Below, in pieces: positions 8,372 through 39,970 of a DNA stretch of 64,000 bases. Where the stretch lies: the NCBI GenBank assembly GCA_047495785.1, contig JBLDXI010000001.1, positions 4,030,001 through 4,094,000 of the forward strand. Direction: 5' to 3'. The stretch comes from Lepidodermella squamata (lineage: Eukaryota > Animalia > Gastrotricha). The position numbers were made by a program, and so were the translations under genes. The notes below the pieces were generated by a model that saw only the letters and a program-made list of their open reading frames with translations, ran no database searches and was not told the DNA's origin. Numbering within the stretch: the first letter of the stretch is position 1; every line of letters begins with the position of its first letter.

Positions 8372-9695
8372 ATGATCCTGTTTTTGACAGCAATTTTCTT
8401 CGGCCAGGCTTGTGCAGATTTGCCAGAAGACATTTCACTCTTGCTGTATCCTGACCTGCAGAATGTGTACTACGATAAACATCCTACAAGTGAGCCATTG
8501 TATGACTCAACTTTTCAATTCAATGAAATTTGAATCTCCGCAGTATATACAAACTATCAGAACCATTGCAGATTGACGAATTACACAATTATGGACGATG
8601 AAAACTACTTCATTTATGGCAGTTTGCCAAAATCTGCCATTGCCTTATCCCTCTCTTACACAGCAAAGTGTTTTATTCAAATAACAGCCAGGGAAGATCT
8701 GATTTTACGACTTCAGCTTTCAATGGCTTCGTCGGGTCTTTGCAGATCAACCAGCGTCTCCCGGAGGTGGTCAGCTCCTGACCAAGTGATGCTCAGGGCA
8801 TGGAGTGGTTTGATAGAGGAAGCGTATCTGGAAACATCCTATGGCGACCTTAATTTGGTTAGTCACCCTATTTCAATCCATTCTAGGTAATTTCTTTCTT
8901 CTAAAGATAATGCAAGCTCCTTCGTCGAAGTTGGGCAACTATTGCGCATCCATGGACGTGAAATCTGCAGTAAACTCGGTTACAATTCTAGCTGAATTTA
9001 CGGGCGATTTTTCACCCAAAAGCGATTTCAACTTCACACTTCAAGTGACAACCCTCGACAAATCGTCTGTTTCTTACGCATCCGACTCTGGATCGCTTAC
9101 GTCAACGCAAGCTATCATTCTCTACGTTCTGCTCGCCATCGGGGCCTTTTTCCTTCTCGTCATAGTAGCATTCCGCATTTTCTTCTATCCACGCAACGGA
9201 GTTCCTTTCAAACAGTTCTGCCTACGTCACAAAATCTGCGGTTGCTGCGTTGGAGAAATTCAAAGCCAACCTGCAGCTAATGTAACGAGACGACGTCAGC
9301 GGCGCATTTTGAATGATGTCGCGAGTTTGGATCAAGTTGCTGCTATCGTTTCCTCCGGGCACTTTTCAACTCACACGAATGTTTTCCTTCACCAAGAATT
9401 GCAACGAGCAGCTGTTTACTGTAAGCAAATAAAAACGTGTTTTCTAGTTTAAAATTTTCTCTATTCAGATACTAACGTAAAATCGCAAAGGCTTATGCCG
9501 TTAATGGAGATGAAAAGTGTGGACTCGATGAAGTCGTTGCGTGGTTGCGAGATCCCATCAGCGAGCGCCCGTGGTCCTAGGATCCTTTCCATGGGGCTCT
9601 CGGCTGAAAGCGAGGAGCTAATCGAACCGAAAATGCCGGCATATCCAATCAACAATGCTGTCAACACGGCAACGCAACATATTATTTCAAGATGA
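8372..9695 (+). CDS. Family member A: type I membrane protein with divergent CUB-like ectodomain
   Basis: Signal MILFLTAIFFGQACA; phase-1 intron, then IYTNYQNHC..ENYFIYGSLP..C..FNFTLQV; TM AIILYVLLAIGAFFLLVIVAF; Cys cluster ICGCC; introns near 8490-8543, 8858-8907, 9421-9468. The 3' end is less certain. Confidence 0.75.
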
Positions 9696-13258: not shown

Positions 13259-15714
13259 TTAAAAAATTAAAATTTCATAAATTAAAAAAATTTTAATTTC
13301 GAAATTACTGGACTAAAATTTAATTCATATGCACATTCCAATATGCACAGTCCGCGGCCTTCGAGGGGCCCATGTAACGGGAGCTTCGAAGCCGCGGCGT
13401 CCTATAGTACGTCTCATGTCCTCAGTGACATTATATCCCTGGCCGCGCAATTCGCTCGCTATTTTCTGGCGAATTTTGTTATGTCTCGAAGTGATTAGCA
13501 ACGAGTTGTAGGGGCAGGCGCCAAGGACGTGAGCAAGAGATTCAATCTCAGCGCCGCATCGACGACACTGGTTTCCGTCCTGACTGACACCTGGTACCCC
13601 TCTAACCGGAGCCGTGTTTGTAGACATTTTGATCGCCATGGTCCATTCAGCAACGCTTAGCCCATTTCTCCGAAAAACCCAATTGTTTGTTTTGGGCACG
13701 CATTTGAACTGGGCAACTCCTCTCCCTTTTTGATCCAAGCTGCACCATGTTTCAAATTCTCGCAGTCGAAGAATGCGACGTATAATCTCAGCATTCGGAG
13801 GAAGAATTTTCTCCGGGTCGAATCGATCATCGTTTTCCATTTCCTCATCCAGATTCTGATCAAGCTCATCATTGTTAAGGTCAACATCAAGTTTCGCTAG
13901 ACATTCTTCCATTTCCTTCTCAAGGTTTCTGCAGGCCAGTACCAGGGGTTCGCCGTTAACTAACAATTTTCTACAAATATTATATATTTGAAGATAAGCT
14001 TCCCAAGTAGCTTTCGGAAGGCCAAGACCACGATGTTTACGAGCAGCATAGAAGAAGCTAGTGGGCGTGCTTGTAGGCAAACCGACGCATTCTTTAACGA
14101 CGCTACGCATAATGACGTCAACGGATTCCAAAAATGTTTTCCTGATCGCTTTAATTGGCGCCGTTTGAAACGGATAAATAAGCTTTGGCCAGATGAACTG
14201 AGTCAAAATAGTCAGTTTTTGGTCTGCTAGTAATAGGTTCGAATTTGCTAGCAGTTCTAGTTGTTCCTTCAGTTCAGAGATGACGGCTGCTTCGTCAAAC
14301 ACAATTTCATCATGGAAGGTGACGCCAAGATACTTGATCGTTTCATCGTTTTTGATTGCCGGAATGGAATCTCCGTTGCTTAAAATCAAAGGATCGCAGG
14401 ATAAAACACCATTTCCCACGATAATCGCTGCGCATTTCTTTACGTTAACTTCCAAGCCTATTTGAGAGAAGAGGTTTCGAGCCATTTCGACGAGTGTTGC
14501 AGCGGAATCACGACTTTTTCCGACTGGGGTTGTGTCGTCTGCAAAGCCGAGCACTGAAACGTTTGCTAGTTCTGATGAAAGCTTAAAACCATAGGCATCA
14601 GCTACTTCTTTTTCTGACAATTCACGAAGGACAAAATCGATACAAAAAGGTTGAAGATGGTTGGTGAGATTGGTGAGCCTTGCATAACTCCTCTTTGAAA
14701 TGAGATTTTAGAAGTTTTGTGACCATTTGCCTCGATCTGAGTGGAATTATGATTAATTAGCTCCAGAATCATTTCACGCAGGTTGCTTGGTATCGGTAAT
14801 GTTTCCAGAGTGCGCTGAATGTGCTCAAAGCCAATGTTGTCAAAGGCTTTTGCCAGATCCAGAAAGGTTACAACGCATGTAGACTTTTCTGCCTTCGCTT
14901 TTCTTAGACAACCGGAAACAATCGACGAGTTTATATGTGTACCGGCGCATGATGTAAATCCACGCTGGTTAGACGAAAAACTTACGTATTCTCGTAGTCG
15001 TCGATCAAGCATTCGTTCGAAAACCCTTCGAACAAGTGAGGTTATCGTAATTGGACGCCAGTTGTTTGGGTCACCCAAATCTCCAGATTTGTCGATCAAC
15101 ACTGTTCTTGCTAATTTGAGGCTCCTCGGAAGCATTTTCCTTTTCAGCATGGAGTTGTATATGAGGACAAGAACGTCAATGCAGCCTTCCGCATGAAGTA
15201 CTCTCATTAGTGTTCTGTCTGGTCCAGGAGATGTATCAAGTGCTATCCCGGCCGCGGCGGCTTTTACTTCGTCAGCGCTTGTTTCGGATTCGAAAGTAGA
15301 GTCAATTTTTGTTTGTTCGTCTACTGTCATCGCATTGTCGTTCAATAAAAACGGCAGTTTATTTGCCGATTCCCATTGGGTTCAGCGGTTTTCGAAAGTA
15401 ATAATAGAAATACTGTCAGTTGGTTGTGATTGATAATATTAAAGAAACACCATTTGAATAAAATCAAAGTTTGAATGATCACGGAAGTAATCACGTTTAT
15501 ACCACCTACATAATTCGATAGATCATCTCCAGAGGAGCATAACGATGTAAATTTTGGGTCATATTTGGTTTCCTTAATATATTGCAGTAACAATGAAAAC
15601 TTAGCAGCCCCTTTCAAACGCAACGCGACGATTTAGGTAACCTCACCCAAAATTGCTGTCGAGGATATCAGTGGCCATTCGTGAATCAATGGCCAAGTGC
15701 TAAATGCTGCCTTG

Positions 15715-19494: not shown

Positions 19495-20453
19495 ATGACT
19501 TCGAACCAATGGACCCTCCAAGGCAAGACAGCGATAGTCACCGGGGCAAATACCGGTATTGGCAAATACATCGCCCTGGAACTGGCACAGCAAGGAGCTC
19601 GGGTTATCTTGGCCTGCCGAAATCCTGCGGCGGCTGACGATGCTGCGGATGAGATAAGACGTGAGCTGGGGATGAGCGAAGAAGTTGGCGAGAAAATGGT
19701 GACCTGGCGCCAGGTTGACCTATCGAATCTGGAGTCAATCCGAAAATTTGCTGGAGAGATCAACTCGAGCTTAGACGAACTTCATGTTTTGGTCAACAAT
19801 GCCGGGCTTCTTCCCCCAGATGAGAAAACCCCGACCCTGGACGGCCGTTTCGAGTTGACATTCGCCACGAACCATCTCGGCCCATTCCTTCTAACGCAGC
19901 TTCTGCTGCCTCTTCTGAAAAAATCTGCACCGAGCCGGATTATCAACGTCTCATCGGTCGGATACAAGATGTGTAACAAGGTCGGAGGTTACAATATTGA
20001 AGACCCGCAATACGACGATCATCCGGAGAATTACGAACCTTGGCTGGCCTATTGCCAGACAAAGTTGGCAAACATTTTGACAACGCGTCAGCTGAAAAAG
20101 AGGCTGGAAGAAACTGGTGTGTCGGTTTTCAGCGTTCATCCAGGCATGGTTAAAACCGATATTTTCCGCCACAGATCGATGAAATTTTCACTATTTTGCG
20201 GACCTGTGGTCTTCATGTTTGGTCGCACCCCGCAAAAGGGCGCGAAACCTGTTGTTTACTGCTGCTCCGAGCCTGGAATTGAGGATATGAGCGGGGAATA
20301 TTTTGTGTAAGATTTGTTTCTTCTTTCTGAACTTTAAACTTTAGCTTTGACTTTTTCAGTGACAACAAGGTTGAAGCTCTTGAGCCCATTGCCAAAGATG
20401 ACGAAATAGGCGAGCGCCTGTGGCAGCTGAGCGAGAAGCTCATCTCAGAGTGA
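19495..20453 (+). CDS. Short-chain dehydrogenase/reductase, retinol dehydrogenase 12/13/14-like (copy 1)
   Basis: TGANTGIG, NNAG, TNHLGPFLLT, YCQTK, VHPG. One intron at 20307-20359; TATA-like TTATAAAA at ~19432. Confidence 0.93.
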
Positions 20454-20914: not shown

Positions 20915-22573
20915 ATGCTTCGCGCCTGGGTGCTTGCAGCTTTCAGCTTATCGCTAGCAATAGCCCAGGGCAATATCGCCTCATTAGAAACGGCCACCAC
21001 AACTGTCAGAATTCCGCTAAGCAATGCTACAACATTAGGGAGAATAACCTCGACTTCCAATTCATCAAATGTTACGGATTCTCGAACGAATGTTACGAAC
21101 ATAATTGCTTCAACGACATTAGCCCCGACTACAAGTAGGTCAACAACAACCACAACTACCCCTTTGATCGTGACAGACCTGAGACGTGAGTTGCGTTTTG
21201 AGATGAAAAATCGGATCTTAACTAGCTGAATTTCAGTAAATGGGTCAAACGATTTCAGCTGCGGGGGGACAGTAATTACGCCTCGAGAGTACTTTATCAA
21301 TCAAACCGATCGCTATGTAATCAGAACAAGGTCCCTGCAAACTGTGGCTATCGGAGCTCCAGGACAGTGGTCAAACTCTTCAGCTTTGACTTGTGTAGCA
21401 GCTATCGTAGCACCGCCGAACTTTCAACTCAGTGTCGATTTCCTGGATAATCTTTGTACAAGAGAGGGTGTACCAGCTTCCGGTTCTTGGCGGGATGGAA
21501 GTGGCTTGCAAGTATGGGATGGCTTCAATTTCGATCAAAGGCCAACTGCAAACGGATCTTATCTCAGGCCCCGAGCTGTTTCTCAAATTGTAAGCTTTGA
21601 TAATTCAGCTAAATGCTGATTTTCTTATTGATTTTTATAGCTGTCAATTCCTGCTCCTAGCTCGAGGATTTGCGCAGCAGAAAGTATTTCTTCGACCACG
21701 AATGTTGTGTCTATAATAGTGAAGCAGCCTCCGAATTATCTCTTCATCGCTGGGTCGAATAATGAAACCTCAAGCTCCCAGACTATAGTTTACGATTTTT
21801 CCCTGGTCATAACAGCGTCGAGGAAGCCATTTGTTACAGAGTTGGTTTCGAATGATAGTACCAACAACTTAGTCTATCTGTCTCTCTTATCTTTGATTGT
21901 GGTGCTAGTTATCATCATAATTTTAGTCAGAATCTTCTGCTGTGATACTGACTGTCCCTGTTTACTCCCGTCTCCCGAAGCAGCAGGGCGGAGTAGTTGT
22001 AAAAATTCTTGCATGGGTTGCTGCTACATTTTTTGCAACTGCTGCAAGCGAAGGGAACGCCGCGAGCCGTACAATATGTCAAACAGTGATACTTATGTAA
22101 CAGAGGCTGTCCACTCCTCAGTACAATCATCAGCTCAAACCTTCAATTCTGACATACCGATGACGAATATTCAGCAGAAATCAAACGGTAACTCTCATGC
22201 CAGGCAGCAAAAGTACCAGGCAGACACGGGAAATAGTTCGCCGCAATACTCCAATATCCGTCCTGCTGGCCAGTCGAAATATGCCGCGGCTGTTCCGCCG
22301 TCTAACTTTGTTTCTACGAATCCTCATGGACCAACACATACCACAGCGACTCAGCCAGCTGGCTTCACAGATCTCGGAGGCGGGGCTGCAGGATATGGCT
22401 ACGAGGAAGAGGAGGATGAAGAGGAGGAAATGGATCAAAACGGGGGAGGGATGTACGGCGGTGGGCATTTCGATCTGCGAAATGCGAACCCTAACAATCC
22501 TTTCCACGGCATGGCGCCGCAGTCGCAGCAAAATGTCCGTGGCCAGCCGAGTTTTCAAACTTACTACGGCTGA
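20915..22573 (+). CDS. Family member B: signal peptide, Thr/Ser mucin-like stalk, CUB-like domain, TM, Cys-rich and NPF-containing tail
   Basis: MLRAWVLAAFSLSLAIA; TCVAAIVAPPNFQLSVDF; LQVWDG; LSIP..C..STTNVVSI; YDFSLVI; TM LVYLSLLSLIVVLVIIIILV; CCDTDCPC, CMGCCYIFCNCC. Confidence 0.8.
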
Positions 22574-22772
22574 GTATCGCAATAATCTCAATAATATCTA
22601 GCCGGTTTTGTTTTTTGTGTTAAATTCTATCGTTAAGAATAAAGCGTTGGCGTGAGTCTATCCACTTTCGATTTTTTTCGCGCAAACGTTTGAATAATTG
22701 ATGAACAAAAAGCGTCATTAGAACGTAGGGTGGCTGCATTCGAACGAAGCCTAGTGTCATTCTTTTCATAAA

Positions 22773-23934
22773 ATGTTGTTCGAAACTTGCATCCTTTCCC
22801 TGGCTATCCGCCTAGCTGCTTCGGATAGGGTGCTATGGCTGTATCCTCGCTCATTCTACTACACTTGGGAAAAGTACAGTTACCATACTGGGAAGGGAAC
22901 CCCTAATCAAACTGGTTTGTTCGCGCACTCTGGCTCTTAAATCTAGCAATTATAATACTTTTCTTTTTCTTTCAGTGTACACGAATTTTCAGAAGCATTG
23001 CACAACTCCGTTGCTCAACTCGACGTCATACGCGATCGATTTTGACGAGACATACAACATTCACGGAAGTCTGCCTACGATCAGCTCTAACTCTCCGTAT
23101 GTTGATAAAAGCACCGGAACTCTGCTGCCAGAATATTACGCTCAGACATGTCAAATTTCACTGGTCGGGCCTGAGCGCTCAAAGCTAAGGCTGACGTTCC
23201 CGAAGGGTGCAACTGATTGCTCATTCTGGGGCACTGGCTGTCGCTTGGACGTTTCTCAACCTGGTGGGAGGTTGGTTTCTCTACCCTCTCCAGCTTGCGG
23301 ATCCTCGGAGCAGGTGTATCTCACGAATGGGAATTCAATTTCGATTAGCGTTACGTCATGCCTCTCAAGCCCTTTTACCAAATTCAACTTCACTTTTGTT
23401 GTCACAGTCGAGAGTAGAAGCCCAGATCCAATTGCTAATATCGAGGGTATAATCATAGCGTCCATATTCACTCCTATCATACTCGCGCTGCTCATTATCC
23501 TGATATCGAAGAAATGCTCTCAGTCAAACCACAGAACAAGGTGTCAGCAAAACGGATGTTGTTGCTGCCAACATAAGACTCGGCGAAATCAACACATTGC
23601 GCCAACAGTTTTCATTATACCCCCAACTGCAAGAGACGATATTGCGACGGCATCGGCTCCTAGGAGTTACGATCTCATCCCGCCCCGTCCTAACTCAGGA
23701 TTCTACGATGTGAATAAACGAGCTGTTTCTCCGTCATTCGACTCGCCACCCCCACCCTATGTTGCTGCAATGCAGGCAATCGGCAGATCGGCTGATTACA
23801 ACCGGCCTCAGTCAACAATTGGTTGGAACATGCAGGGGATAGAACGAGACCTGACGCAGGGTGAAATCTACCCCCAGCTTAGAGAACGCACCGAAGTTGC
23901 ACTGAGACCATCTAAACCTACGTCATATGCCTGA
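22773..23934 (+). CDS. Family member C
   Basis: Exon 1 MLFETCILSLAIRLAAS..WLYPRSF; intron 22915-22975; VYTNFQKHC..ETYNIHGSLP..CSFWGTGC..FNFTFVV; TM; CCCC; PPPPY; IYPQL. Confidence 0.85.
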
Positions 23935-24088
23935 ACATTGTTTTTTTTATGAATTCCGTAAATAAATCCAGTATGATTCATGGGAAATTTTTTATAATCG
24001 AATTTTATTAATAATTTACTATGGGGAAGTACGATGAATGTATTTATGCAAGGCTACAGCGCATCCTTTTATAGGCAAAACTAAAAAA

Positions 24089-25230
24089 ATGCTGCTGGTG
24101 ACATGTTTTATAACAATAGCCGTTAAGCATGTCGCTTCCGACACTGTTTTTTGGCTCTATCCGCGGTCGTTTTTCAATACTTGGGACAAGTATAGCTACC
24201 ATACCGCGCAGGGTCTCCCGAATCAAACGGGTTAGTTGTTGATGTCCAATGACCAAAAATGGCTACATTTTAAATCTTTTTTCGTTTAGTTTACCTTAAT
24301 TTCTTGAAACACTGCACCAGTCCAACCTTAAATGCCTCGTCATTTTCCATAAATTTCGACGAGACGTACAACATAGTTGGCAGCGTGCCACAGATGAGCT
24401 TCAACTCGCCTTTTGTCAACGGGGATACCGGAAGTTTGCTGCCAGAATATTTTGCACAGAACTGCTCCATTGCAATTTTCGGGCCGGAAAATGCACTTTT
24501 GCGGGTGAAAATTGTCAAAGATACTGCTGATTGCTCTTTCTGGGGACAAGGCTGCCAAGTCGTGCTGTCAAATCTAGGTAACCCAATCGTAGCTCTTCCT
24601 TCGACCACCACAGCCTGCGGACGGAATGAACTGAGCTATACAACGACTAGCAGTTACCTATCAATCAACTCTACATCATGCTTCTCGACTCCCTCGGCAG
24701 ACTTTAATTTTTCAATTGTTGTAACGGTAGTGGATGATGATGGTGATGGCAGCAATGCAATCGGCCCGATTGTTGCTGGGGTGCTTAGCGCGATTGGCGG
24801 GATCACACTGTTGATTATTAGGTCAATTTCATGTTGCAATGACTCTAACTGCACATGTGTGCTAGGCGTGTGCTGTATTTGTTTTATTCGAATTGCTAAT
24901 TCCTGCGGCTGTACTACGGCAGATCGGTGTTGCTGTTGCAAAAGACGCTCGGCTAATGTAGCCCCATCACTTGTTATCATCCCGCCCACTGCGAGGGATG
25001 ATCCGACGAATGCACCTGCCCCGGCTTATGAGGATGATGATGATTCGAAATCAGTGGATTCGGCTGTTGAATCACCACCACCGCCTTATATAACTGCAAT
25101 GCAGGAATCAGGTCTTCACCGTCCGAATTCCTCGGCTCGACCCCAGTCAAATGGAGCTCAGATACCTGATTTGTATCCTCCACTAACTAGAGAAGAAACT
25201 AACGCTATCAATAGATCCTCTAAAGTTTAA
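24089..25230 (+). CDS. Family member D (close paralogue of C)
   Basis: MLLVTCFITIAVKHVAS..WLYPRSF; VYLNFLKHC; CSFWGQGC; IIPPTARDD shared with C; PPPPY; LYPPL. Confidence 0.85.
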
Positions 25231-25428
25231 AAGACGCCCATTTTTCGAATAAATGTATTTTCTATTTGTCATTTCTCTGACTTGAATTATTGATTTATCG
25301 TTTAATGCGTAGTGGTAACAATAGATATTTGTTGCTAAGCAACAATAGATCTGTACGCAAACACGGCGACATGTTGATCCAGCGGCCAATGAACCCACCA
25401 CTTGGAATGCAGAATGCTCTGCGAAAGC

Positions 25429-26582
25429 ATGGCTGATGCGAGAACAGTTTTAATAGTCCTAGTATTGCAACTGGGCCAAGTTGAATGTGGCTCCAATGTC
25501 GCGATTTACCCAAGGTCATTTAGCTTCTCATCGGACCAATTTTACACTGGTCCGGGTTTCGCTGCTTTGAAATCACTCCCGAGTATCTCTTCCAGCGGCT
25601 ATCAGATCTCGGGAGCTTTGATTGATCAAAAAGGTGGGGTTGCCTTATTCTCAATTTAAAATCTTTCTAAGTCGTTTTAAATTCAGTTTATGGAAACTTC
25701 TACTATCATTGCTCGGGCTATCCTCTTTACACGCAGAACTACAACGAGAGATACATAGTCTATGGAAGTGTTCCGATGATGGCTGATGGCCGTGGACCTT
25801 TCGTCGACACTAGTGGAAATGTTCTAACGAGCTACCTCGCAGATGTGTGTCAATTTTCAATAACAGCTCCAGATGGGAATGTACAACAGGTGGCATTCAG
25901 CGATTCTCAATGCAGCCAATGGCCAGTTGGCTGCTCGATTAGCGTCTACGAAGGTTCCATTTTTAACAAAGCCGCGTTTTCATACACTCAAACGAAAGAC
26001 GGGAGTCTAACGAGCTGTAGTAACAGTTTCTACACAACCTCGAACATGGTCGCGGTTAGCATTGTTCAATGCAACCCGAATCCGAGTCAAAACTTCAATT
26101 TCACGATGACGGTTACCCCGGCGAAGAAGAATGATGAAGTTCCAATCGCGTACATAGCTATTGGAGTCGTTGTTGGAGTTGTTGTAATTGCTATAATTGT
26201 TACTATTATCTGTTGTTGCTGTTGTGCTAAGACTTGTTGTTGTTGTTTCGTAAATTTGTGTACCTGTTGCTTTTGTCAGAAGACTACGACTGTTACTACT
26301 CAAAACCAACCGATTTCGCCTTCGAAACCAGCAGCAAATGTTGCAGTTGTCTCCAAAAATACCGCTAAAGACAGCGTAACTCCAGGCATCTATCCAAAAC
26401 TTGACTCTCCGCCCCCTCATGCTCCTCCTGCTCCTTCTGTAATATCTCATCAAAATATAAATGAAACCCAGAAACCTTCTTCTGATCAAGGTGTGACACC
26501 TACTGATGATGAAATTTACTCGAAAAGTAACGTAGATAATCCTCAACCTTTGTACCCCGTGCTTAACCAGCCGGCCAAATGA
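25429..26582 (+). CDS. Family member E
   Basis: Signal peptide, IYPRSF, intron, VYGNFYYHC..ERYIVYGSVP; CSQWPVGC; CNPNPSQNFNFT; TM followed by CCCCC/CCCC; IYPKL, LYPVLNQPAK*. Confidence 0.85.
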
Positions 26583-26821
26583 ATAAAAAGTGAAGCCTCT
26601 GGACTCATATCGATTTTTTGAATTAGTAATGACCGCATCCATGAGTTTGCTACCAAGGAATAAAAAAACAAGCAAACGTTTATTGATCATAACAGATCCC
26701 ACCTGCATATCGTTCTATCGATCGCACCATTGTTCGACTGCAAACAACATCATCCCATCGCTAGATTTTTAGAACGAAACGAGCCTGTATTATCAAGGTT
26801 TTTATTCCTTACAAAAATCCC

Positions 26822-28290
26822 ATGTTAGGGTGTCAAAGTTTTATTCTCCTCATTTGGCTGAATTCAGCAAATGCTGCGAGGGTATACATAGGTTACTCAC
26901 CGAGAGTCTATGCCTTGTCATCGTATTCCTCGTACTATTACTACTCCGGTTACTCGCCGTATTCCAGCGTTTATTTGGGGATATCATCCTCAAGCAGTTC
27001 TTCTAGTGGCTATCAAACTGCGAGCAGCTTTGATGATCAAAGAGGTGAGTTTCATTCAAATAGTGTGGTTCCAACTAAATCGTCTTGGTTTTGATAGTCT
27101 ATAGTAACTTCATCTACCACTGCAATGCAACGCCGTCCTTTCAGCAGAACTACAACGAGCGATACTTCATTCATGGAAGTGTGCCTATGACTTACGACGG
27201 CTCGTCCCCATTTGTAGACACAAATGGGATACCTTTGACAAACTATTTGACCGACTACTGCCAATTCACCCTTGCTGCACCTACAGGATACGTACATAAG
27301 ATGACATTCAGCGATGACAATTGTAAACAATGGTCTAGCGGCTGCACGTTGACTGTTTATGAGGATTCATTCGGGGGGAAAACTATTCTAGACCTGCCAT
27401 CTCTCAGTTCAAGCTGCTCTAGTCGATCCTTATACACTAGTTCTAATGTAGTTGCAGTTAAAGTTACTCAATGCAATCCGAATCCGAGCCAATACTTCAA
27501 TTTCACCTTAACATTCGTGCCTGCGAAATGGGTGAGTAGCAGCAGCAGTATTTCAGGGGTGGTTTACATCTCAATTGGCGCTGTTGCTCTGGTGTTCGTC
27601 GGACTATTCTTTTTGTTCCGATGGTGCTGCAGGCAGCCGCGGTACTATCAAAGGATTGCATGTTACTGCTGCTGTATGAGACCCCCTGTCACCCAGGTGA
27701 CACCTCGGCAACAAGTTTTCGCAACTCAATCGTCAGCCTATCCACCGCCTCATATCCAGACTCAAATCATCATTCAGCCGAACGGGGAAATTGCAAGGTG
27801 CGAGAGAGATGCTTATGGCAACGTGATTCAAGTTACGGGTATCAACCAGCCGCCGCCTTACCCAACTGGGCCTAATAAAATGGCGGTTGCCATGCCAACA
27901 CCACCCCCTCCTTACCAGCCGCAACCGCCAGCTGATGTTAGATTGTTGAGAGCAGAGCTGTCAGTTTCCGAGACTTCTTCAGTAGCATCCAATGAAGCCT
28001 TACAACCAGCGGGCCCTGGTATTGCCTCGCACCCAGTATCAGCAGCGGTACCAAGCGTGGATCCAACAATTTATACTGCTGGCTCAACAGCTAAGATCGC
28101 TCCAGGCAGGCCGGGTACGCTACAGCCCAGAACTACTCCGACCGTCCAAAGTGCAGGCATTGTCCAAGGTCAAACTTCTGTGAATAATGGACCCTCGGAA
28201 AACCCTGGAGATCCGAACCCTGGAGACATATACGGTTCAACAGGGGATGCCCAGCCCCTGCATGCTGTGATGAATCAACCAGCTAAATGA
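26822..28290 (+). CDS. Family member F (close paralogue of E)
   Basis: MLGCQSFILLIWLNSANA; VYSNFIYHC..ERYFIHGSVP; CKQWSSGC; CNPNPSQYFNFT; TM; CYCCC; two PPPY; ends NQPAK*. Confidence 0.85.
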
Positions 28291-28845
28291 ACAGGAAATA
28301 ATAGATATGTCAGTGTTTTTGGCTCTTCAAAAGTGTGACATGATTAAGCTGAGATATTGTCATGAGTCATGAGATAATTTACTAATAAAATCACGACTGA
28401 AAAGTAGAATGCAAAGCTAGCAGTGAGGCCTGCTCGTGGGAGCCGAGGCGTGGTAATTTGAAACCGTTAGACAAAGTTTCTGGAATGCAGTGTCACAAAA
28501 AAATAATTAAGTACATGTTCAAAAAATTTTCCGATAACATATCGCAGTCATATTTCGCCAAATGTTCTCGCAGTACGCGGAAAGGCATTTTTTCTCACGT
28601 ATTTTGCATCTGACGACGTGTGAGGCTTCCTAGGGTCTTGAATTAAGACATGGGCCTTTTTATCACCCCAGGAGGAATTCGCTTAAAAGCTTAGCTGAAA
28701 GCTTCCGCTTCCGCTCGAACTCGCAACTTGGGACCGACCTGCCGCTATAAAATCAACGCAGAATCACGGCGAAAGCATCATTCAAGCAGACATATATTCT
28801 TACATTCAAAATCTTTACACGCCTCAACTAACGCTCGGCATCACC

Positions 28846-29061
28846 ATGAACGCACGCGTCGAACTACTCCTGTACAAAGTGATGACTGCTTCATGCTCGA
28901 AATCGACTCAAAGCGATGCGAAACCGAAACCTGTTCGAAGCCAATCTTGCGAACATCGGCCTGCAATCATGTCTCACATCACCCACACTATCAAACAGGC
29001 GGTGCGGGGTGATGGAGCGAAACTTCTTTTGGAGCCGGCCCTGAGCGCACCAAACCTTTAA
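28846..29061 (+). CDS. Putative 71-aa orphan small protein
   Basis: TATAAAA at 28746, Inr-like CATCATT ~30 bp downstream, CACC-ATG context, AATAAA at ~29092. Confidence 0.5.
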   Translation: MNARVELLLYKVMTASCSKSTQSDAKPKPVRSQSCEHRPAIMSHITHTIKQAVRGDGAKLLLEPALSAPNL

Positions 29062-29238
29062 ATAATTGTTATCTCAAGATTGTTATCAATCAATAAATAT
29101 GTATCTCTGCATAATTTCTAGTCTTTTGATCACGTAATTTGGGTGCATCTTACAATGATGCGTAAATAATTTATTGCGAAAAGGGATATTTAGTCCATCT
29201 TAATTTGCAGGCTCTAGTCTTTGTGCAGACCAATAGTT

Positions 29239-30276
29239 ATGAACTCTCGCGTAGCTTCAATTGTTTTGGTGCGAATTTTTGGCTTTAACGTGGTTTTTGG
29301 CCACTTGGGGCTGTGGATCTATCCCAGATCGTTTTTTAGCGGAACGCAACAGAAGTCCTCGGAGGCGAAACCTCCATCGTTTTCAGGTCGGCAAAATGTC
29401 CACTGTTTCAACGTTAATATACAAACTGAATCGATTTTTCAAGTTTACTCAAATTTCATACACCATTGCATAGCTGAGGCGTATGCTATCGACTTCAACG
29501 AAACTTATTACATTTACGGTTAGTTTTTCCCTCGATTTGCGCCACTTACGTCATAGGTCATGTGATTTGCGTCATGATTTCCAGGAAGTGTACCCGAAAC
29601 AGACGTATTTTCGCCTTACACGAGCAAAACAAAGCCTTACTACACGGAGTCACGTTTCTTGTCCCCAAACTGCTCGTTCACGATCCTGGGCCCTGAGCGC
29701 GGAATATTGTCCCTTCAGGTTGAAGTGATGCAAATGAGGCCGAAACCTGCTATCACTTCAAGAATCAATACGAAGTGCTACAAACACGAGTTCTGGTTTC
29801 ATTTTCATGGCCCAGCTGCAGTGGATGGGTTGACAGAACGAGTTATGAGCTCGTCAACACTGGCCTATGGTGGAACTTTCAGCGCGAAGACACACTCCAA
29901 TCTTGTCGCTTTTCACTCGCAAAATAACCTGAAATGTCGGCGAAATTTCACGATCAGGCTTACGGTGGAAAGACGTCCTCAAGTTGAAGTTACTGCTCAA
30001 ACCCGAAATATATTTTGGCCATTATTCGGAATAGGCGCTGCTGCTGTTACTGTAGGTATCCTGGTATTTTTTTACTGTTTTATGAGAAGGAAAATGTTGC
30101 CGCGGCAAGCCAAAACTCAGCAACCTCCGACGTCGATCGGACAACTCGAAAATCTTGAAATGCTGCTGAAATTGTATAATCAAGGCGAGTTGGGGGCGAT
30201 TTCGAACTGCGATATGAATGAATATAGCGAAAAATGCCCCAGACACGAGGTAGAGATTCACGGTGCAACTCTGTGA
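29239..30276 (+). CDS. Family member G
   Basis: WIYPRSF; VYSNFIHHC..ETYYIYG|SVP; CSFTILGP; SNLVAF; NFTIRLTV; TM IFWPLFGIGAAAVTVGILVFFYCF. Confidence 0.8.
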
Positions 30277-30482
30277 GTGTGAGAAATTTGTAAAACTTTT
30301 GAAGTAAACAACGTGAAATGTGCTGATCTGAAGCATTTACGACTACCATTAGCTAGTCCAGCCATAGCAACAGAGAGCTACGATAGCAACGATGGAGAGT
30401 TCACGCTGCACTTTGGTGGGAGAACGACATACGAACCTGGCAAAATTTAATATCAAATGAAAGTGCCATTCGAAAATCCGAA

Positions 30483-32080
30483 ATGAAAATTATCTTAACC
30501 CCAATACTGCAATTATTTTTCTTGATCTATTCTTGCCATGCACAGAAGGGTACCACGACCACCCTCAGTGATAAGGATGCTCTCTTGGAGCAGCTTCGGA
30601 TCATGGATGATATGCTGAACGAGTATGGCCACTATCCAATCGATATCAAAGATCGCAGGCCTTTGACGCCGAGATCAAATATGTATATTAACAATGTAAC
30701 AAGTGAGCTACTCACCTCATAGAAGATATACGTTGGGTATTTATATCTTACCTTTGCCTCTCAGTGTTTGGTAACTATCATGGTCATTGCTACAATCCGA
30801 AGCCTTACTTCACAGAAAACGAAAAAGATTCTTATACCATTTATGGCAAGTTTTTAATGAATTTCTCGCAAGTCGCTGTTAATGATAAAATGATAAAATA
30901 GGAAGTCTTCCTTCATCTGAGCGGAAGTATTCAATCTCTTCAAATACGCCATGTCACATTCAAATTTCGGCCCGAAAATTGAAAAACAACGACCCGGCAA
31001 ATGCAATGACTTTCAAGATTGCTTTCTCAATGGCTCTGTCTAGCTTGTGTTCAGCCTTGGGAATTCCCCAGGATCCGGAAGCCTTTGGTTTCAGGTTACA
31101 GGTCTTGGATGGCGATGTATCCCTGGATGATGCTACTAATGGCCTTAAAAACTCATCCATTGTAAGTTTCATTATGACGCCGATCATGCAAATAGCTCAG
31201 GAACTCTTCGCCTCAGCTTTTGGACCTTCCGAGCAAAAATTCAGATCCCTGCGCGTCAGCCATGGTTACGTCGACGAAAAACGTAATTACGATAATAGCG
31301 ACGTATAACATCGATACAATTGACCTCGACACCAATTACTCTTTGGTTATTCAAACAACCGTGCCTACGTCATCGACAGTTCAGAATGATGCAAAAGGGG
31401 CGCAATTTACCGCTTTGTGGGTCTGTATTGCCGTAATTTGCGTGGCTGCGATAGTCGCAGCTATCTTTTTCGTCTATCGAAAAATGAACAAAAAACGCTT
31501 AAGATCGAGCATCCTGCCGGTCTATCAAAAGAGGAGAAGCACTAATCCTCAGATAAGGATTACAGATGCTCAACTGCATGGACACCCTGTAACCCCAGGA
31601 TGTACGCATTTCCGGAAAAATCGAAAATGTCAATATTTTCTGTTTTAAAAACAGATCACTTTGAGGAAAAAGCTACTCAAATAGACCCGATCAGAACCCC
31701 TAGCCACGAGGAATTTAGATCGGTAAGTTTTAGTTCCTTACGACGCCCAGATCTCGTTCACCTTGTTTTTCTGCTGTTAGAGGAGAGCGTCGGTTGTCTC
31801 AGTGGGTGCCTTTAGTCAGCACGGCGGTATCGATCCTGTACCAACTCCACTACCCAACAGGCGAGTCTCAATTGTTTCTCTTTGTCCAGAAGTTCATTCT
31901 TTTATGCATGATTTTGATGACGCCTCACGTCGCTACAGCCCGCCCAACTCAGACCTCTCAGTTAGTCAAATTTCAGCCCAGCCTGGCTCCGCCCGACTCT
32001 CGCTGCCCCTTGCTACGACTGGAACAGCTCCGCCTGGCAGCAGACGGCATTCGTCTAATCTTGTTAATGGTCTTGAATGA
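30483..32080 (+). CDS. Family member H
   Basis: MKIILTPILQLFFLIYSCHA; VFGNYHGHC..DSYTIYG|SLP; CHIQISA; LQVLDG; intron 31162-31216 gives LLDLP..C..STKNVITI; TM ALWVCIAVICVAAIVAAIFFVY. Last exon ends NGLE*. Confidence 0.75.
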
Positions 32081-32441
32081 GAGGATACCCTCGAGTAACC
32101 TTGATTTCGTGGGATTTTCCTGCGACGCAGAGAGCTGCAGGCAGCTTTTAGCGAACATTTTGTCGCGTTTAGTGAGTGGTGATGAGTGATCATTAATAAA
32201 TTAGCGAATCGCTTATCCGGCGTCGATTTGTTGATGAAAAAAAACTAAGTTGCGTGGTAACCACGCGCATCCACTAGGAATTGTCACAATTTGGCTGAGG
32301 ATTCCCTTCAACCTGTTTTGCGGTGGAATAAAAAAAAACAAGTAGTAGCTTCAAAGCATCAACATGTTTGCTTGCTTTGCTGGACGCGGGCAATATAAGG
32401 GACGGCGAGCGATAAACAATCACAACAACAAGAAAGCTGGG

Positions 32442-33988
32442 ATGGAAATTAGCATCGCAATTTCCACCTGGCTCCTTGGTCTATTCGTCCTAACCGAGGG
32501 CGCAAGTATACCTCTCAATCTCAATGACCTCCCGAGTGATGACACCGCGATCTCTTTGTCCCTCTCAAACGATACTGACAGCAAAATCGCTATTTTTGGT
32601 AATTTTACTAATAGTTAACGAGGTAGAGATAAAATTGTGTTTCTTAGGCCCTCTCGTGAATAGAGACGATTCTTTTGAAATCAACATAGCAATCGCTGCT
32701 CCGGATGGATATTTGATACGGACGGTGTTTTCCAGTCGATTTTACTCATGCTACCGAGGTCGAAAGCCTACAAGTTGGCCAGCTGGTTGGACGATGACAA
32801 TTCACGACGAAAATCCATCGACCAGCGCATTGGTAAGGCTCTAAATCTTCTTAAACCCTGTTAAATAGTCCTTATTTCTGTCTCCAGCTTTCACTGCCCT
32901 ATGGAGCAACTTATCTAACCACGGGAAGTGCTTGTTTCGTAGCAGGAGCGATTTCGAGCTCGAACTACGCCACGGTTATCTTCCGATTCTCAGTAGACCC
33001 TTCGGCGAGCATTCTACAGACAGACAACAACTTCACCCTACTTTTAACCCCTGTTCTAAAGTCACAAGTTGACTGCTCGCTATGGGAAACAGCGTCAAAC
33101 AGCGTTTGCTCTGGCAAAAATGACGGAGGTTCCGTTTCTATGAACGTTGTCTACATCGTTGGGGCATTTATAGCCGTCATAGTTGCTGGGGTGATCGCTC
33201 TAATCGGAAGGGCAGCTTGTAAGCACTACGAGAAAATGCGGAATAGAAGACTGTCAAGTCATATCATTGATGCGAACGGTAATCTGGGAGATATCACAGC
33301 TGGGGAAATGAGCAGTCGACGAGTCCAGCGGAAGATCAAGCAAATTTTGATGCAGCCTGTTCCGTCACTAGCCGCTCTTGTCCAGCGACACTCTGAGGTT
33401 GCAGCTGTTACGGAAATGTGGCGCAAGGAGCATCATGGCAGGGAACATCGAAGAAATAGCCAAGTTCAAGGCACGAGTCAACTTCAGCCGCCATCTCAGC
33501 GCCGCCACGAGCCGTTAGGGAACAGACTTTCCACCCTTAGTACGTCAAGCCACGCTCCACTGATGCGGAACCACTCGAATAATCTAGCGGCAACCTTGAA
33601 TGCTCCCCTGGACCACAATCCAGACCCAGATCTTGGTAGGATTCTTGGATGAAAACCTTAATGTTTATTGATTTTCCTCCACGCAGAGGGTGATACAATG
33701 ACAGGATTCCCAAAGAAAGGAAGCAAGGGTATGGCAGAGACTGACTTCACTTATCCAAATGATGGTATTGTAAGTTTTGATTTGTTTACATTAGGGCGTA
33801 GTTGATTTTGATGTTCTATTTAGGAAATCGTTATAGGTCCTATACAACCAGCGTATTGTGCCCCCGATTTGACAACTGCAAGGCATGAGGTCTACAACGG
33901 CCAAGGACCATCCGCTCCCATTGACCCGTTATCGACTGTTGACGACCCTAAATCGCCGGTTCATCCGTGCGCAGTCGCTCAGATGTAG
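32442..33988 (+). CDS. Family member I
   Basis: MEISIAISTWLLGLFVLTEG; IAAPDGYLIR; SWPAGW; LSLP; SSSNYATV; NNFTLLLTP; TM VVYIVGAFIAVIVAGVIALIG. Two further exons end ..GPSAPIDP..VHPCAVAQM*. Confidence 0.75.
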
Positions 33989-34369
33989 TCAACAAGTTGA
34001 CTTATTCATTCGCCCCTTTTATTTTTTGTTAACACCCTAATCATCGCCTATTCACGTTATTTTTACATACAACACATGCTTTTGAATATTTTATTGTAAG
34101 ATGTGATTCAAGATGTTGTTGTTTGTGGACAATAAAAACTACGAGTGGTGAAGTAAAAAATGCATAGTAAACGCCGAGTGAGTGAATGGCGCGCGTGATT
34201 GGGCCGCTGCCAGCAACACGCAAAACAAAGAGCGCTGCTATTTCCAACCTATTGTTAGCAGGGGCGGAAAGCGACGCACGCAATTTTTGCGTTAATGTCA
34301 CCTTACCGCGAGGAAAAAATTACTCGCTATCAAAATCTTGGCATTTGGCCTTAAATTTTCACGAAAGAC

Positions 34370-35740
34370 ATGTCAAAATTAAGAATTCTACACCTGTTCA
34401 TTCTCGTCGTGGCACAATGCTCCTCGCAAGACACTTCGGTCTTTGAAAAGCTCAACTACGGCATTGATGACCCGCTGCCGAGTGTTGCGCCCCAGAAAAG
34501 ACACAGCCCTGCTCAATTTAATCAATATCAGGATGAGTTATCAAGAGGTAATGCGTTCTGTTTATTTCTTTAGAATAACTTCACCGTTTTTTGTTCCTAT
34601 AGTTTACGCAAATTACTTCGAGCATTGTTACGGCAGTCCGAGCTACTTTCTTGAGCAGAACCAGCGCTTCGTGATTCATGGTTAAAATAGCTATTTAAAT
34701 TTAGCATAAATTCAATGTCTCAATTTTTGCAGGAAGTGTGCCCTCGATCGAGGCAGGAAATTCAACAGGAAATAGCAGTGAAACCACAGCCAGTAACTCT
34801 CAATGGACTTCTTACTTCTACCTTTCGCCAGTCTGCTTGTTCACAATCACCGGGCCCAAAAATCAATTTCTGCAATTGAAATTTGATGATCCAACCAATA
34901 TTAACTGCAAATCATGGCCACCTGGTTGTTCAGTAACCGTGTGGAATGGGAATTACAAAACTGACCCGAAAAATTCGCCAATACTGCTAACTCTACCAGC
35001 AACTGCTCCGGATTCAAACTCAACAGATGAAGACACTAGGCCTACAGGTTGCTCATTTGAAGCATTTTCCAATACAAATGTACTGACAGTGAGAGTTGAT
35101 TCTTGTCTGCCGACTCCAAGTCGCGAATTCAACTTCACGGCTGTGATAGCTCCATTGAAATCAAAGGCTCTTCAAGTTGGTCTAGGGGATGAAGTTACAA
35201 CCAACTTCACCATGTTTTACACCGTGACTTTTGTCGTAGCTTTCGCTATTGCAGTTGGCTTCTTGATTCTGCGCATGTTGAAGCCACCGAAACGTCTGAA
35301 AGCGTTGAAAAATCGATTCTTCTGCTGCTGTCTGCCAATATCGATTCTGCCGCGGGGCGGAAGTGCTAATTACGTAACGCCCGCTCCAGTCAACAGCTAC
35401 ATGCTACAATTAAAAACTAATTGCGATGATTCATCGAATACCAGCTCCCCACTGCCGTCACGCTGCGGCGCCTACGGCGGGGTCGATTCATCAGGAACAA
35501 GCAATGCCAGTGACACAGCTCGTACGGTAACCACGATTGCCCCAGATAGTTGCCGGCAATCCAGTTAGTCAATTATTCATTTCAGTGAAAACTATAAATA
35601 GTTACATTTCAGGAATGAATAAGGTACACCCCCAATCGGAGCGACCGCCTCTCATCAAATCGCTGTCCGCCCAATCAAGAGATGACGACATTTCTTTGCC
35701 TGGTTTTCCCTCAAACGAACACATTTCATGTCCAGTATAA
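34370..35740 (+). CDS. Family member J
   Basis: MSKLRILHLFILVVAQCSS; VYANYFEHC..QRFVIHG|SVP; CLFTITGP; CKSWPPGCSVTVWNG; LLTLP; CLPTPSREFNFT; TM; FFCCC. Confidence 0.82.
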
Positions 35741-37320: not shown

Positions 37321-38522
37321 ATGGAAATATTATTCAACGCATTAGTCTTGTTATCGGTCGCCATTTACGAGGGCCAAGTTAATGGTCTGGCGATTGCGCC
37401 TCTTCTGAACAGAGGAATAGCGAAGCCAAACAATCGAGGCGGATCGAATAGCTACAACTACCGACCAGTATCTGGCAGTAGGTCGGGAGGTTCCAGCTAT
37501 GCAGGAGTATCCTACAACTCCATAGTTGTTGTAGGAAAACCCAGCGCAATCTACGGAAGTGTCAGAGTTGTTAAACCAGTTACAACAAACGTAAGACCTG
37601 TCGATCTCGAGGAGCCTTATTATCTGTACGGCGATGATGACGATGACGACAATAGCACTGTCGCCAATGCCACAAACGCAGCTAACGCTACAGGCCTATT
37701 GAGAATGGGCTCAGTCTCAAATGTCACGGTTGTGAGCAACATCACTAGCTTGGCATCAATATTTCCGGCGGTCAATGGTTCGGCGAATAGTTCCAACACT
37801 ACAGCTTGGAAGATCTACGCGAATTACTTCAAGCAATGCGTCGATCCTCAGGGTTACGGCTTGAGCCAAGATGAGACTTATCAAGTCTACGGTGAGTTGC
37901 GATCTTATATGGATGAGCATTTTGAAAGCATTCAAAATTTTCAGCTCTTGCTCCTCCTGCGCCTGACGGAACATCCTATGCAAACTTCTCCTTCTTAGCT
38001 GTACCGGACGATGACAACAGTAATACGACTGAGTTGGCTTTAATCCGCGTATTCACCGATGCTTGCTTCTTCACGATAACTAATCAAAATGAGAGCGGTA
38101 GGCTGAAAGTAACCGTTAAAACAGCTGTTGGTCCAGGTGAGGACTGCGCTGCGCGAAAGGTCGAAAATTATCAATGGCCGTCGGGTTGCGTGCTCAACAT
38201 TTACCAGGGCAACACAAACAGCGATTGGACAATGGCTAGGTCAGCGCTGCAGATCAACTCGAACGGCGCGCTGACGTGTGAGCGAAGTTTTATCACCGAT
38301 CAAAACGCTGTCGGTTTTGAAATGAAGTGGTGTCTTGAGCACCAGGAGGAGATTAGCGACCGCCTTAACTACACAATACTAATCGAGCCTGTTGCCCCGG
38401 CCCCCGTTACAACTACAGCCGTTATCAACCGAACTGAAATCGCGAGGCCTGCTGCAAGCCGAGCGCATATTGGAGAGATCTCTTCTACTTTCTTATTATT
38501 CACTATTTTGATACTCTACTAA
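37321..38522 (+). CDS. Family member K, ending in a GPI-like hydrophobic tail with no cytoplasmic domain
   Basis: MEILFNALVLLSVAIYEG; IYANYFKQC..ETYQVYG; CFFTITN; WPSGCVLNIYQG; LNYTILIEP; tail ISSTFLLFTILILY*. Confidence 0.78.
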
Positions 38523-39037: not shown

Positions 39038-39970
39038 ATGCAAGCCACTTCTATGCCTCAATGGACCGTTGCCGGCAAAACTGCTATCGTAACTGGAGCA
39101 AATACTGGCATTGGCAAATGTATTGCCCTCGAGCTCGCTAGACAAGGCGCTAAGGTGATCTTAGCCTGCAGAAACATCGAAGCGGCGGACGATGCTGCGG
39201 AGGAGATTCGCCGCGAGTTGGGAATGAGCGAAAAACTTGGCGAAGAAATGGTATCTTGGCGTCAAGTTGACCTCTCAAGCCTCGAATCCGTCCGTCGATT
39301 TGCGGAAGAAATCAACAAAAGCCTTACAGAGCTCCACCTTTTGGTCAACAATGCTGGTGTTTTGCCTCCGGATCAACGTTCTACAACGAAGGACAACAAG
39401 TTCGAACTGACATTTGCTACGAATCACCTCGGCCCTTTCCTCCTAACGCAACTGCTGCTTCCTCTACTGAAGAAATCAACGCCAAGCCGTATCATCAACG
39501 TATCCTCAGTTGGCTATAAAATGTGCAATCGCGTTGGCGGTTACAACATCGAAGATCCCCAATACGAGCAACACCCTGAGAACTACGAGCCGTGGATGGC
39601 TTATTGCCAAACTAAGCTCGCAAATATTCTCACCACTCGGCAGCTGAAAGAGCGACTCGATGGGTCTGGGGTCTCGGTTTTCAGCGTCCACCCTGGCATG
39701 GTGAAAACTGATATCTTTCGCCATCGATCAACGAAATTCTCTCTATTCTGTGGCCCGATTGTGTTTGCATTTGGTCGCACCCCTGCAAAGGGAGCCAAGC
39801 CGGTCATTTACTGCGCGACGCAGTCTGGTATCGAAGATCTGACTGGATCTTACTTTGTTGATTCTAAAACCGAGGCTTTGGAGCCTATTGCAACTGACGA
39901 TGCAGTTGGCGAGCGTTTATGGCGTCTCAGTGAAGAACTCGCTGGAATCGAAGCTGAGACAAGCGCGTGA
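39038..39970 (+). CDS. Short-chain dehydrogenase/reductase, RDH12/13/14-like (copy 2, intronless)
   Basis: Highly similar to 19495-20453 (TGANTGIG, YCQTK, SSVGYKMCN); reads YFVDSK through the position where copy 1 has its intron. Confidence 0.93.
   Translation: MQATSMPQWTVAGKTAIVTGANTGIGKCIALELARQGAKVILACRNIEAADDAAEEIRRELGMSEKLGEEMVSWRQVDLSSLESVRRFAEEINKSLTELHLLVNNAGVLPPDQRSTTKDNKFELTFATNHLGPFLLTQLLLPLLKKSTPSRIINVSSVGYKMCNRVGGYNIEDPQYEQHPENYEPWMAYCQTKLANILTTRQLKERLDGSGVSVFSVHPGMVKTDIFRHRSTKFSLFCGPIVFAFGRTPAKGAKPVIYCATQSGIEDLTGSYFVDSKTEALEPIATDDAVGERLWRLSEELAGIEAETSA

Follow-up and report, generated by a model that had tools for sequence, protein, structure and literature searches.

What do the cytoplasmic tails of a tandem array of receptor-like genes in the gastrotrich Lepidodermella squamata recruit? 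The array lies in a stretch of 64,000 nucleotides (assembly GCA_047495785.1, contig JBLDXI010000001.1, positions 4,030,001 to 4,094,000 of the forward strand), which we call the window. It is a family of 11 genes, labelled A to K, all on the + strand between approximately 8.4 and 38.5 kb of the window. A sequence-only reading had noted that the tails of this family collectively carry all three "late-domain" motif classes of the endosomal sorting complexes required for transport (ESCRT), namely PPxY, YPxL and PSAP, together with NPF. It proposed that the proteins recruit a ubiquitin ligase and ESCRT to remove captured targets or to bud into extracellular vesicles, as ARRDC1 and viral Gag do. 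The motif finding is restricted to genes B to I of the 11, and every motif string listed there is present on the + strand. The observation is real and its headline is overstated: one class is conserved, one is uncertain and two are noise. The conserved class is PPxY, which is retained in the C/D and E/F subfamilies and is probably functional.

Open segments and alignments gave a layout shared across the family: a short first exon that opens like a signal peptide, then an ectodomain, one transmembrane (TM) helix, a juxtamembrane stretch and a tail. The ectodomain spans about 155 residues and carries one to five N-glycosylation sequons; its cysteines number six in C to F and five in the analysed exon of J. 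The juxtamembrane stretch is basic and often extremely Cys-rich, and the tails are 57–224 residues long with 6–16% proline. The best explanation is a family of lineage-specific type I single-pass membrane proteins, each with one divergent CUB-fold ectodomain.

We compared the motif counts of nine window tails with 20,000 composition-preserving shuffles of each. PPxY (4 observed, 0.54 expected, P = 0.002) and YPxL (4 observed, 0.16 expected, P about 1e-4) exceeded chance, whereas P[ST]AP (1 observed, 0.21 expected, P = 0.19) and NPF (1 observed, 0.14 expected, P = 0.13) did not; C/D, which are recent paralogues, and E/F form paralogue pairs, and independent motif events are fewer than these counts. 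Thus all of the motif classes are literally present, but PSAP and NPF are single chance-level matches in different proteins. Two of the four YPxL sites, that of D and the second of E, satisfy the stricter ELM pattern [LM]YPx[LI]. When all three-residue patterns were counted without bias in 15 tails, SPxP, PPP, SxPP and PPxY came out on top and YPxL ranked 41st. As the sequence-only reading had stated, the motifs of C and D persist in tails that otherwise diverge: these are 44% identical, with conserved islands around IIPPTARDD, SPPPPY..AMQ and YPxL.RE. The nine residues of IIPPTARDD are identical in C (23614–23640) and at the aligned site of D; they do not occur in the relative described below and match no motif known to us.

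A word-based protein search with C as the query found no relative. An exhaustive profile search returned 10 matches, six of them family members, all from metagenome assemblies. Among the remaining matches, P0007 was rejected because Pfam identified it as a bacterial Ig-like (Big_1) repeat protein, and P0005 and P0006, with the same long multi-stretch match pattern, were set aside as repeat-summed noise. The relative has a syntenic array (contigs L001 and L002) in the order C/D-like, E/F-like, I-like, J-like and K-like, followed by a short-chain dehydrogenase (SDR), DIM1 and GMP synthase. The end of the window array follows the same order: J, K, SDR, GMP synthase. The GMP synthases of the relative and the window are 74% identical, while the best named animals, from many phyla, reach approximately 50–55%. 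At this distance the relative can serve to test conservation, and no close annotated genome represents the host lineage.

Four of the relative's six tails contain a total of seven PPxY and one LPAY; 0.21 PPxY were expected, and none of 10,000 shuffles reached seven. The positions of these sites coincide with those of PPxY in C, D and F, and both PPxY of F are matched in order, position and context by the relative's E/F-like gene. An alignment of the five C/D-like tails of the two species, with 20–25% identity between species, leaves only P-P-x-Y and one other proline invariant. None of the relative's six tails contains YPxL, P[ST]AP or NPF. PSAP is absent from its I-like gene, neither PSAP nor any other listed motif was found in the DNA downstream of that gene (all + strand frames), and no B-like gene was found in the relative. 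In this comparison PPxY is conserved across orthologues, and none of the other three classes recurs in the relative. The E/F subfamily has a further element shared by both species, a C-terminal block reading DPNPxD(D)xIYG ... QPL.AV[LM] (F 28200–28287, E 26520–26579, L001 9380–9461), which is the best conserved tail element after PPxY.

The genes and motifs concerned are as follows.

20915..22573 (+), gene B: signal-peptide/Thr-rich exon, CUB-like exon (21230–21616) and exon with TM helix, Cys-rich stretch and tail (21641–22570).
22496–22504 (+), the single NPF of gene B (NNPFHG).
22975..23934 (+), gene C main exon: CUB-like ectodomain, TM helix (23449–23505) and tail, with PPxY at 23749–23760 and YPxL at 23869–23880.
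24289..25230 (+), gene D main exon: PPxY at 25078–25089 and YPxL (LYPPL) at 25174–25185.
25686..26582 (+), gene E main exon: two YPxL, at 26391–26402 and 26553–26564.
26406–26420 (+), SPPPH of gene E, aligned to the PPxY of C, D and F, with His where they have Tyr.
27097..28290 (+), gene F main exon: two PPxY, at 27850–27861 and 27904–27915, and no YPxL.
29218..30276 (+), gene G: short tail with none of the four motif classes.
30483..32080 (+), gene H, an approximate gene model: TM helix at 31418–31474, and LPVY 12 residues past it.
32364..33988 (+), gene I: exon borders near 32597/32647, 32831/32887, 33634/33686 and 33769/33824.
33908–33919 (+), PSAP of gene I, in its last exon (open piece 33824–33985).
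34370..35568 (+), gene J: CUB-like ectodomain, TM helix and a tail without the listed motifs; its orthologue in the relative (P0002/P0012) likewise lacks them.

Whether PSAP belongs to a tail at all depends on the structure of gene I, whose tail we handled as three separate exon pieces, with the reading frame carried across the joins by phase arithmetic. By that arithmetic the last exon is in frame, and PSAP therefore lies within the cytoplasmic tail of I. Contigs of run X1, which we take to be RNA because they show GT..AG joints, were examined over 28100–34090. One of them, of 1305 nt, connects the gene I exons through GT..AG introns and includes the PSAP exon, so the assignment of PSAP to the I tail was right. 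X1 contigs also back the gene G intron at 29518/29585 and cover the 3′ end of gene F. Genes F, G and I are transcribed. In DNA run X2, two contigs span the gene I tail stretch 33475–33713, one with the window sequence and the other with 15 differences, which may reflect a second allele or a closely related paralogue.

AlphaFold2 (AF2) modeled the ectodomain and TM helix of C with a mean predicted local distance difference test (pLDDT) score of 73, and with values of approximately 70–93 across most of the beta-sandwich. The best Foldseek matches of this model in the PDB were CUB domains, those of MASP-1, spermadhesins, neuropilin, Neto2 and TSG-6 (E of about 1e-5, probability 1.00, TM-score approximately 0.6–0.68 by target for single CUB domains). 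At the sequence level, the sole link to CUB is a match of the family profile to a seven-CUB protein, P0008 (E = 1.4e-6). Pfam scans of all paralogues and of separate exons yielded nothing above threshold, including no CUB and no LDL-A. On the strength of the model, the ectodomain is a divergent CUB fold. The full-length model of C has pLDDT values of 30–38 across the entire tail, which is predicted to be disordered. PPxY is placed C-terminal of the TM helix, beyond the basic Cys-rich stretch, and the sequons and signal-peptide exon fall on the ectodomain side; in this predicted topology PPxY sits in a cytosolic, accessible, disordered segment.

Class I WW domains, chiefly those of NEDD4-family HECT ubiquitin ligases, recognize PPxY. 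The account that we favor, and consider rather likely, is that the proteins are CUB-like receptors with a single membrane pass, and that their conserved SPPPxY docks WW domains, most probably those of the NEDD4 family, for ubiquitin-dependent down-regulation. The PY motif would dock the WW domains of a NEDD4-family HECT ligase, and the docked ligase would then ubiquitinate the receptor, whose tail contains lysines, and possibly also proteins bound to it. Ubiquitination would lead to endocytosis and to ordinary ubiquitin-dependent ESCRT sorting to the lysosome. The ESCRT pathway is thus likely entered indirectly, via ubiquitination, and the receptors may also act as adaptors. Of the proposed recruitment of ligase and ESCRT, the ligase half is supported, with PPxY the best conserved tail element among paralogues and in the relative and the tail predicted to be disordered; the ESCRT half lacks support as a family property. 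PPxY is the one tail element that selection has held fixed, and as a ligase docking site it predicts rapid, regulated turnover of these surface proteins. It also offers a starting point for tests on a lineage-restricted receptor family that otherwise has no annotation.

Several points weigh against this account. Only C, D and F of the approximately 11 paralogues carry PPxY; it is absent from G, H, I, J and K, and E has His for Tyr. PPxY is a subfamily trait of C/D and E/F. Conservation was tested against a single relative lineage, with six tails. The RNA evidence comes from 28100–34090, which lies beyond C, D and E, and it concerns F, G and I. WW domains of non-ligase proteins (YAP, WWOX, MAGI, dystrophin) also bind PPxY, and the partner is thus not fixed; binding to WW domains or NEDD4, and the fate downstream of it, are steps that we infer.

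The alternative that survives best concerns tyrosine. YPxL and the conserved [IL]Y could be other tyrosine signals acting beside the PY motif, either YxxPhi signals for AP-2 mu2 or Src-type phosphotyrosine/SH2 sites as in CDCP1 and DCBLD2. All YPxL sites are also YxxPhi sites. Each of the six [PL]PxY motifs in the C/D-like tails of the relative has xx[LV] directly after it (PPLYSTL, PPTYSEV, PPAYREV, PPSYQDV, PPHYDDL, LPAYDDL), as in the ENaC-type PPxYxxL. In the relative and in C, D, E and F, the residue before Tyr is aliphatic (EIY, DLY, GIY, TIY, DIY, LIY, SIY). YxxPhi is mildly enriched (12 observed, 7.6 expected, P = 0.06), but that enrichment is marginal and the Tyr positions align ambiguously across subfamilies. 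We regard this reading as possible, though unlikely. The YPxL sites of C, D and E are a young, species-specific addition of uncertain role, and they suit a YxxPhi or phosphotyrosine signal just as well as an ALIX site.

A more skeptical view holds that all the motifs, PPxY included, are functionless by-products of proline-rich disorder and shared ancestry. Proline does make up as much as 16% of the tails, the sharing within the C/D and E/F pairs is partly inherited, and the motif classes were picked after the sequence had been seen. However, in both species PPxY is commoner than tail composition predicts; it ranks among the top patterns of the unbiased count and is the only element left invariant in tails that are otherwise so divergent between species. 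This view is distinctly improbable.

The third alternative takes the motifs as true late domains: the tails would directly recruit NEDD4, ALIX, TSG101 and EH proteins and bud outward into extracellular vesicles in the manner of ARRDC1 or Gag. C and D each pair PPxY with YPxL approximately 40 residues apart in one disordered tail, YPxL well exceeds its shuffle expectation with exact LYPxL in D and E, and the PSAP exon of I is expressed in frame. Against this, the relative's tails lack YPxL, PSAP and NPF altogether. The C-terminal PLYPVL of E lies inside the otherwise conserved QPL..V block, where F has LHAVM and the relative LRAVL. PSAP and NPF, both at chance level, occur in proteins without PPxY: PSAP is found only in I, and P[ST]AP is missing from C, D and F, so no single polypeptide has the ARRDC1 pairing of PSAP with PPxY. 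PSAP in I and NPF in B are most likely chance. For the family as a whole there is no support for direct recruitment of ALIX or TSG101 with vesicle budding, outward budding of the Gag or ARRDC1 kind is speculative, and we consider the late-domain reading as a whole very improbable. A narrower variant, remote in our estimate, is that in C, D and E of this species an ancestral NEDD4-docking tail acquired ALIX sites of the LYPxL type. The resulting cell-encoded transmembrane receptor would have two late domains, as Gag does, and could bring about its own release on vesicles of the plasma membrane or undergo direct, ALIX-dependent, ubiquitin-free sorting.

Other features of the family deserve mention beside the tail motifs. 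The Cys-rich juxtamembrane stretch is probably palmitoylated. Extreme Cys clusters stand immediately after the TM helix in E (26211–26285), C (23515–23575), D (24830–24950) and F (27620–27680); the E tail has 13 Cys among its first 22 residues, and the length of the Cys stretch differs between paralogues. These clusters look like a multi-palmitoylation platform. Gene K (37321–38522; L001 13087–14343 in the relative) has a CUB-like domain but no TM helix followed by a tail, and ends in a short hydrophobic C-terminus resembling that of a glycosylphosphatidylinositol-anchored protein. Its orthologue in the relative, P0004, has the same build.

Reverse-transcriptase-like ORFs of a retroelement (13325–15345, − strand) separate gene A (8841–9452) from the remaining genes. 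Two paralogous SDR genes lie in the array, one between A and B (19495–20310) and one after K (39038–39970), and the relative's contig has a single SDR gene, after K. Two copies in the window against one in the relative suggest that part of the array was carried along in a segmental duplication or rearrangement. Directly upstream of the relative's array (L001 3188–6187) is a gene for a 1000-residue protein that has a TM helix at its C-terminus and faint cadherin-like repeats.

How does the proposed docking of a ubiquitin ligase by PPxY compare with known systems? The same design has been proposed for LRP10, LRAD3, PMEPA1, NDFIP and Commissureless. In NDFIP1/2, PMEPA1, CYYR1 and Commissureless, all membrane proteins, WW domains dock on PPxY or LPxY motifs of a disordered cytosolic tail, which frequently holds two of them. 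Their ectodomains and topology differ from those of the window family, and there is no homology. ARRDC1 and retroviral Gag use the same short motif classes, and C and D hold PPxY and YPxL in one tail, but the window PSAP is a singleton in a different paralogue and neither YPxL nor PSAP is conserved in the relative. Moreover, the window proteins are transmembrane receptors, whereas ARRDC1 and Gag are peripheral membrane budding factors. Ligands of EH domains usually have multiple NPF motifs, or NPF followed by acidic residues; the window family has a single NPFHG, in B.

In overall layout, Neto1/2, CDCP1, DCBLD2 and SOL-1/LEV-10 resemble the window family, with a CUB-fold ectodomain, one TM helix and a signalling tail. 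This match is at the level of the fold only, at 8–21% sequence identity, and the tails are unrelated. LRP10 is a CUB-containing single-pass protein whose proline-rich tail carries PPxY, and LRAD3 (LDLRAD3) activates Itch and Nedd4 through two PPxY motifs (PMC11315911). LRP10, LRP3, LRP12 and LRAD3 are, like the window family, type I single-pass proteins with proline-rich PPxY tails. However, they have LDL-A modules, and the window family has none, only one very divergent CUB fold that the Pfam CUB model misses. The poly-Cys juxtamembrane stretch and the tandem, lineage-restricted organization are likewise peculiar to the window family. With no detectable sequence homology between the tails, the likeness is one of design only and not of membership. 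The mechanism that we favor is ordinary cell biology rather than a new system, and the family would be a new lineage-restricted instance of a known design.

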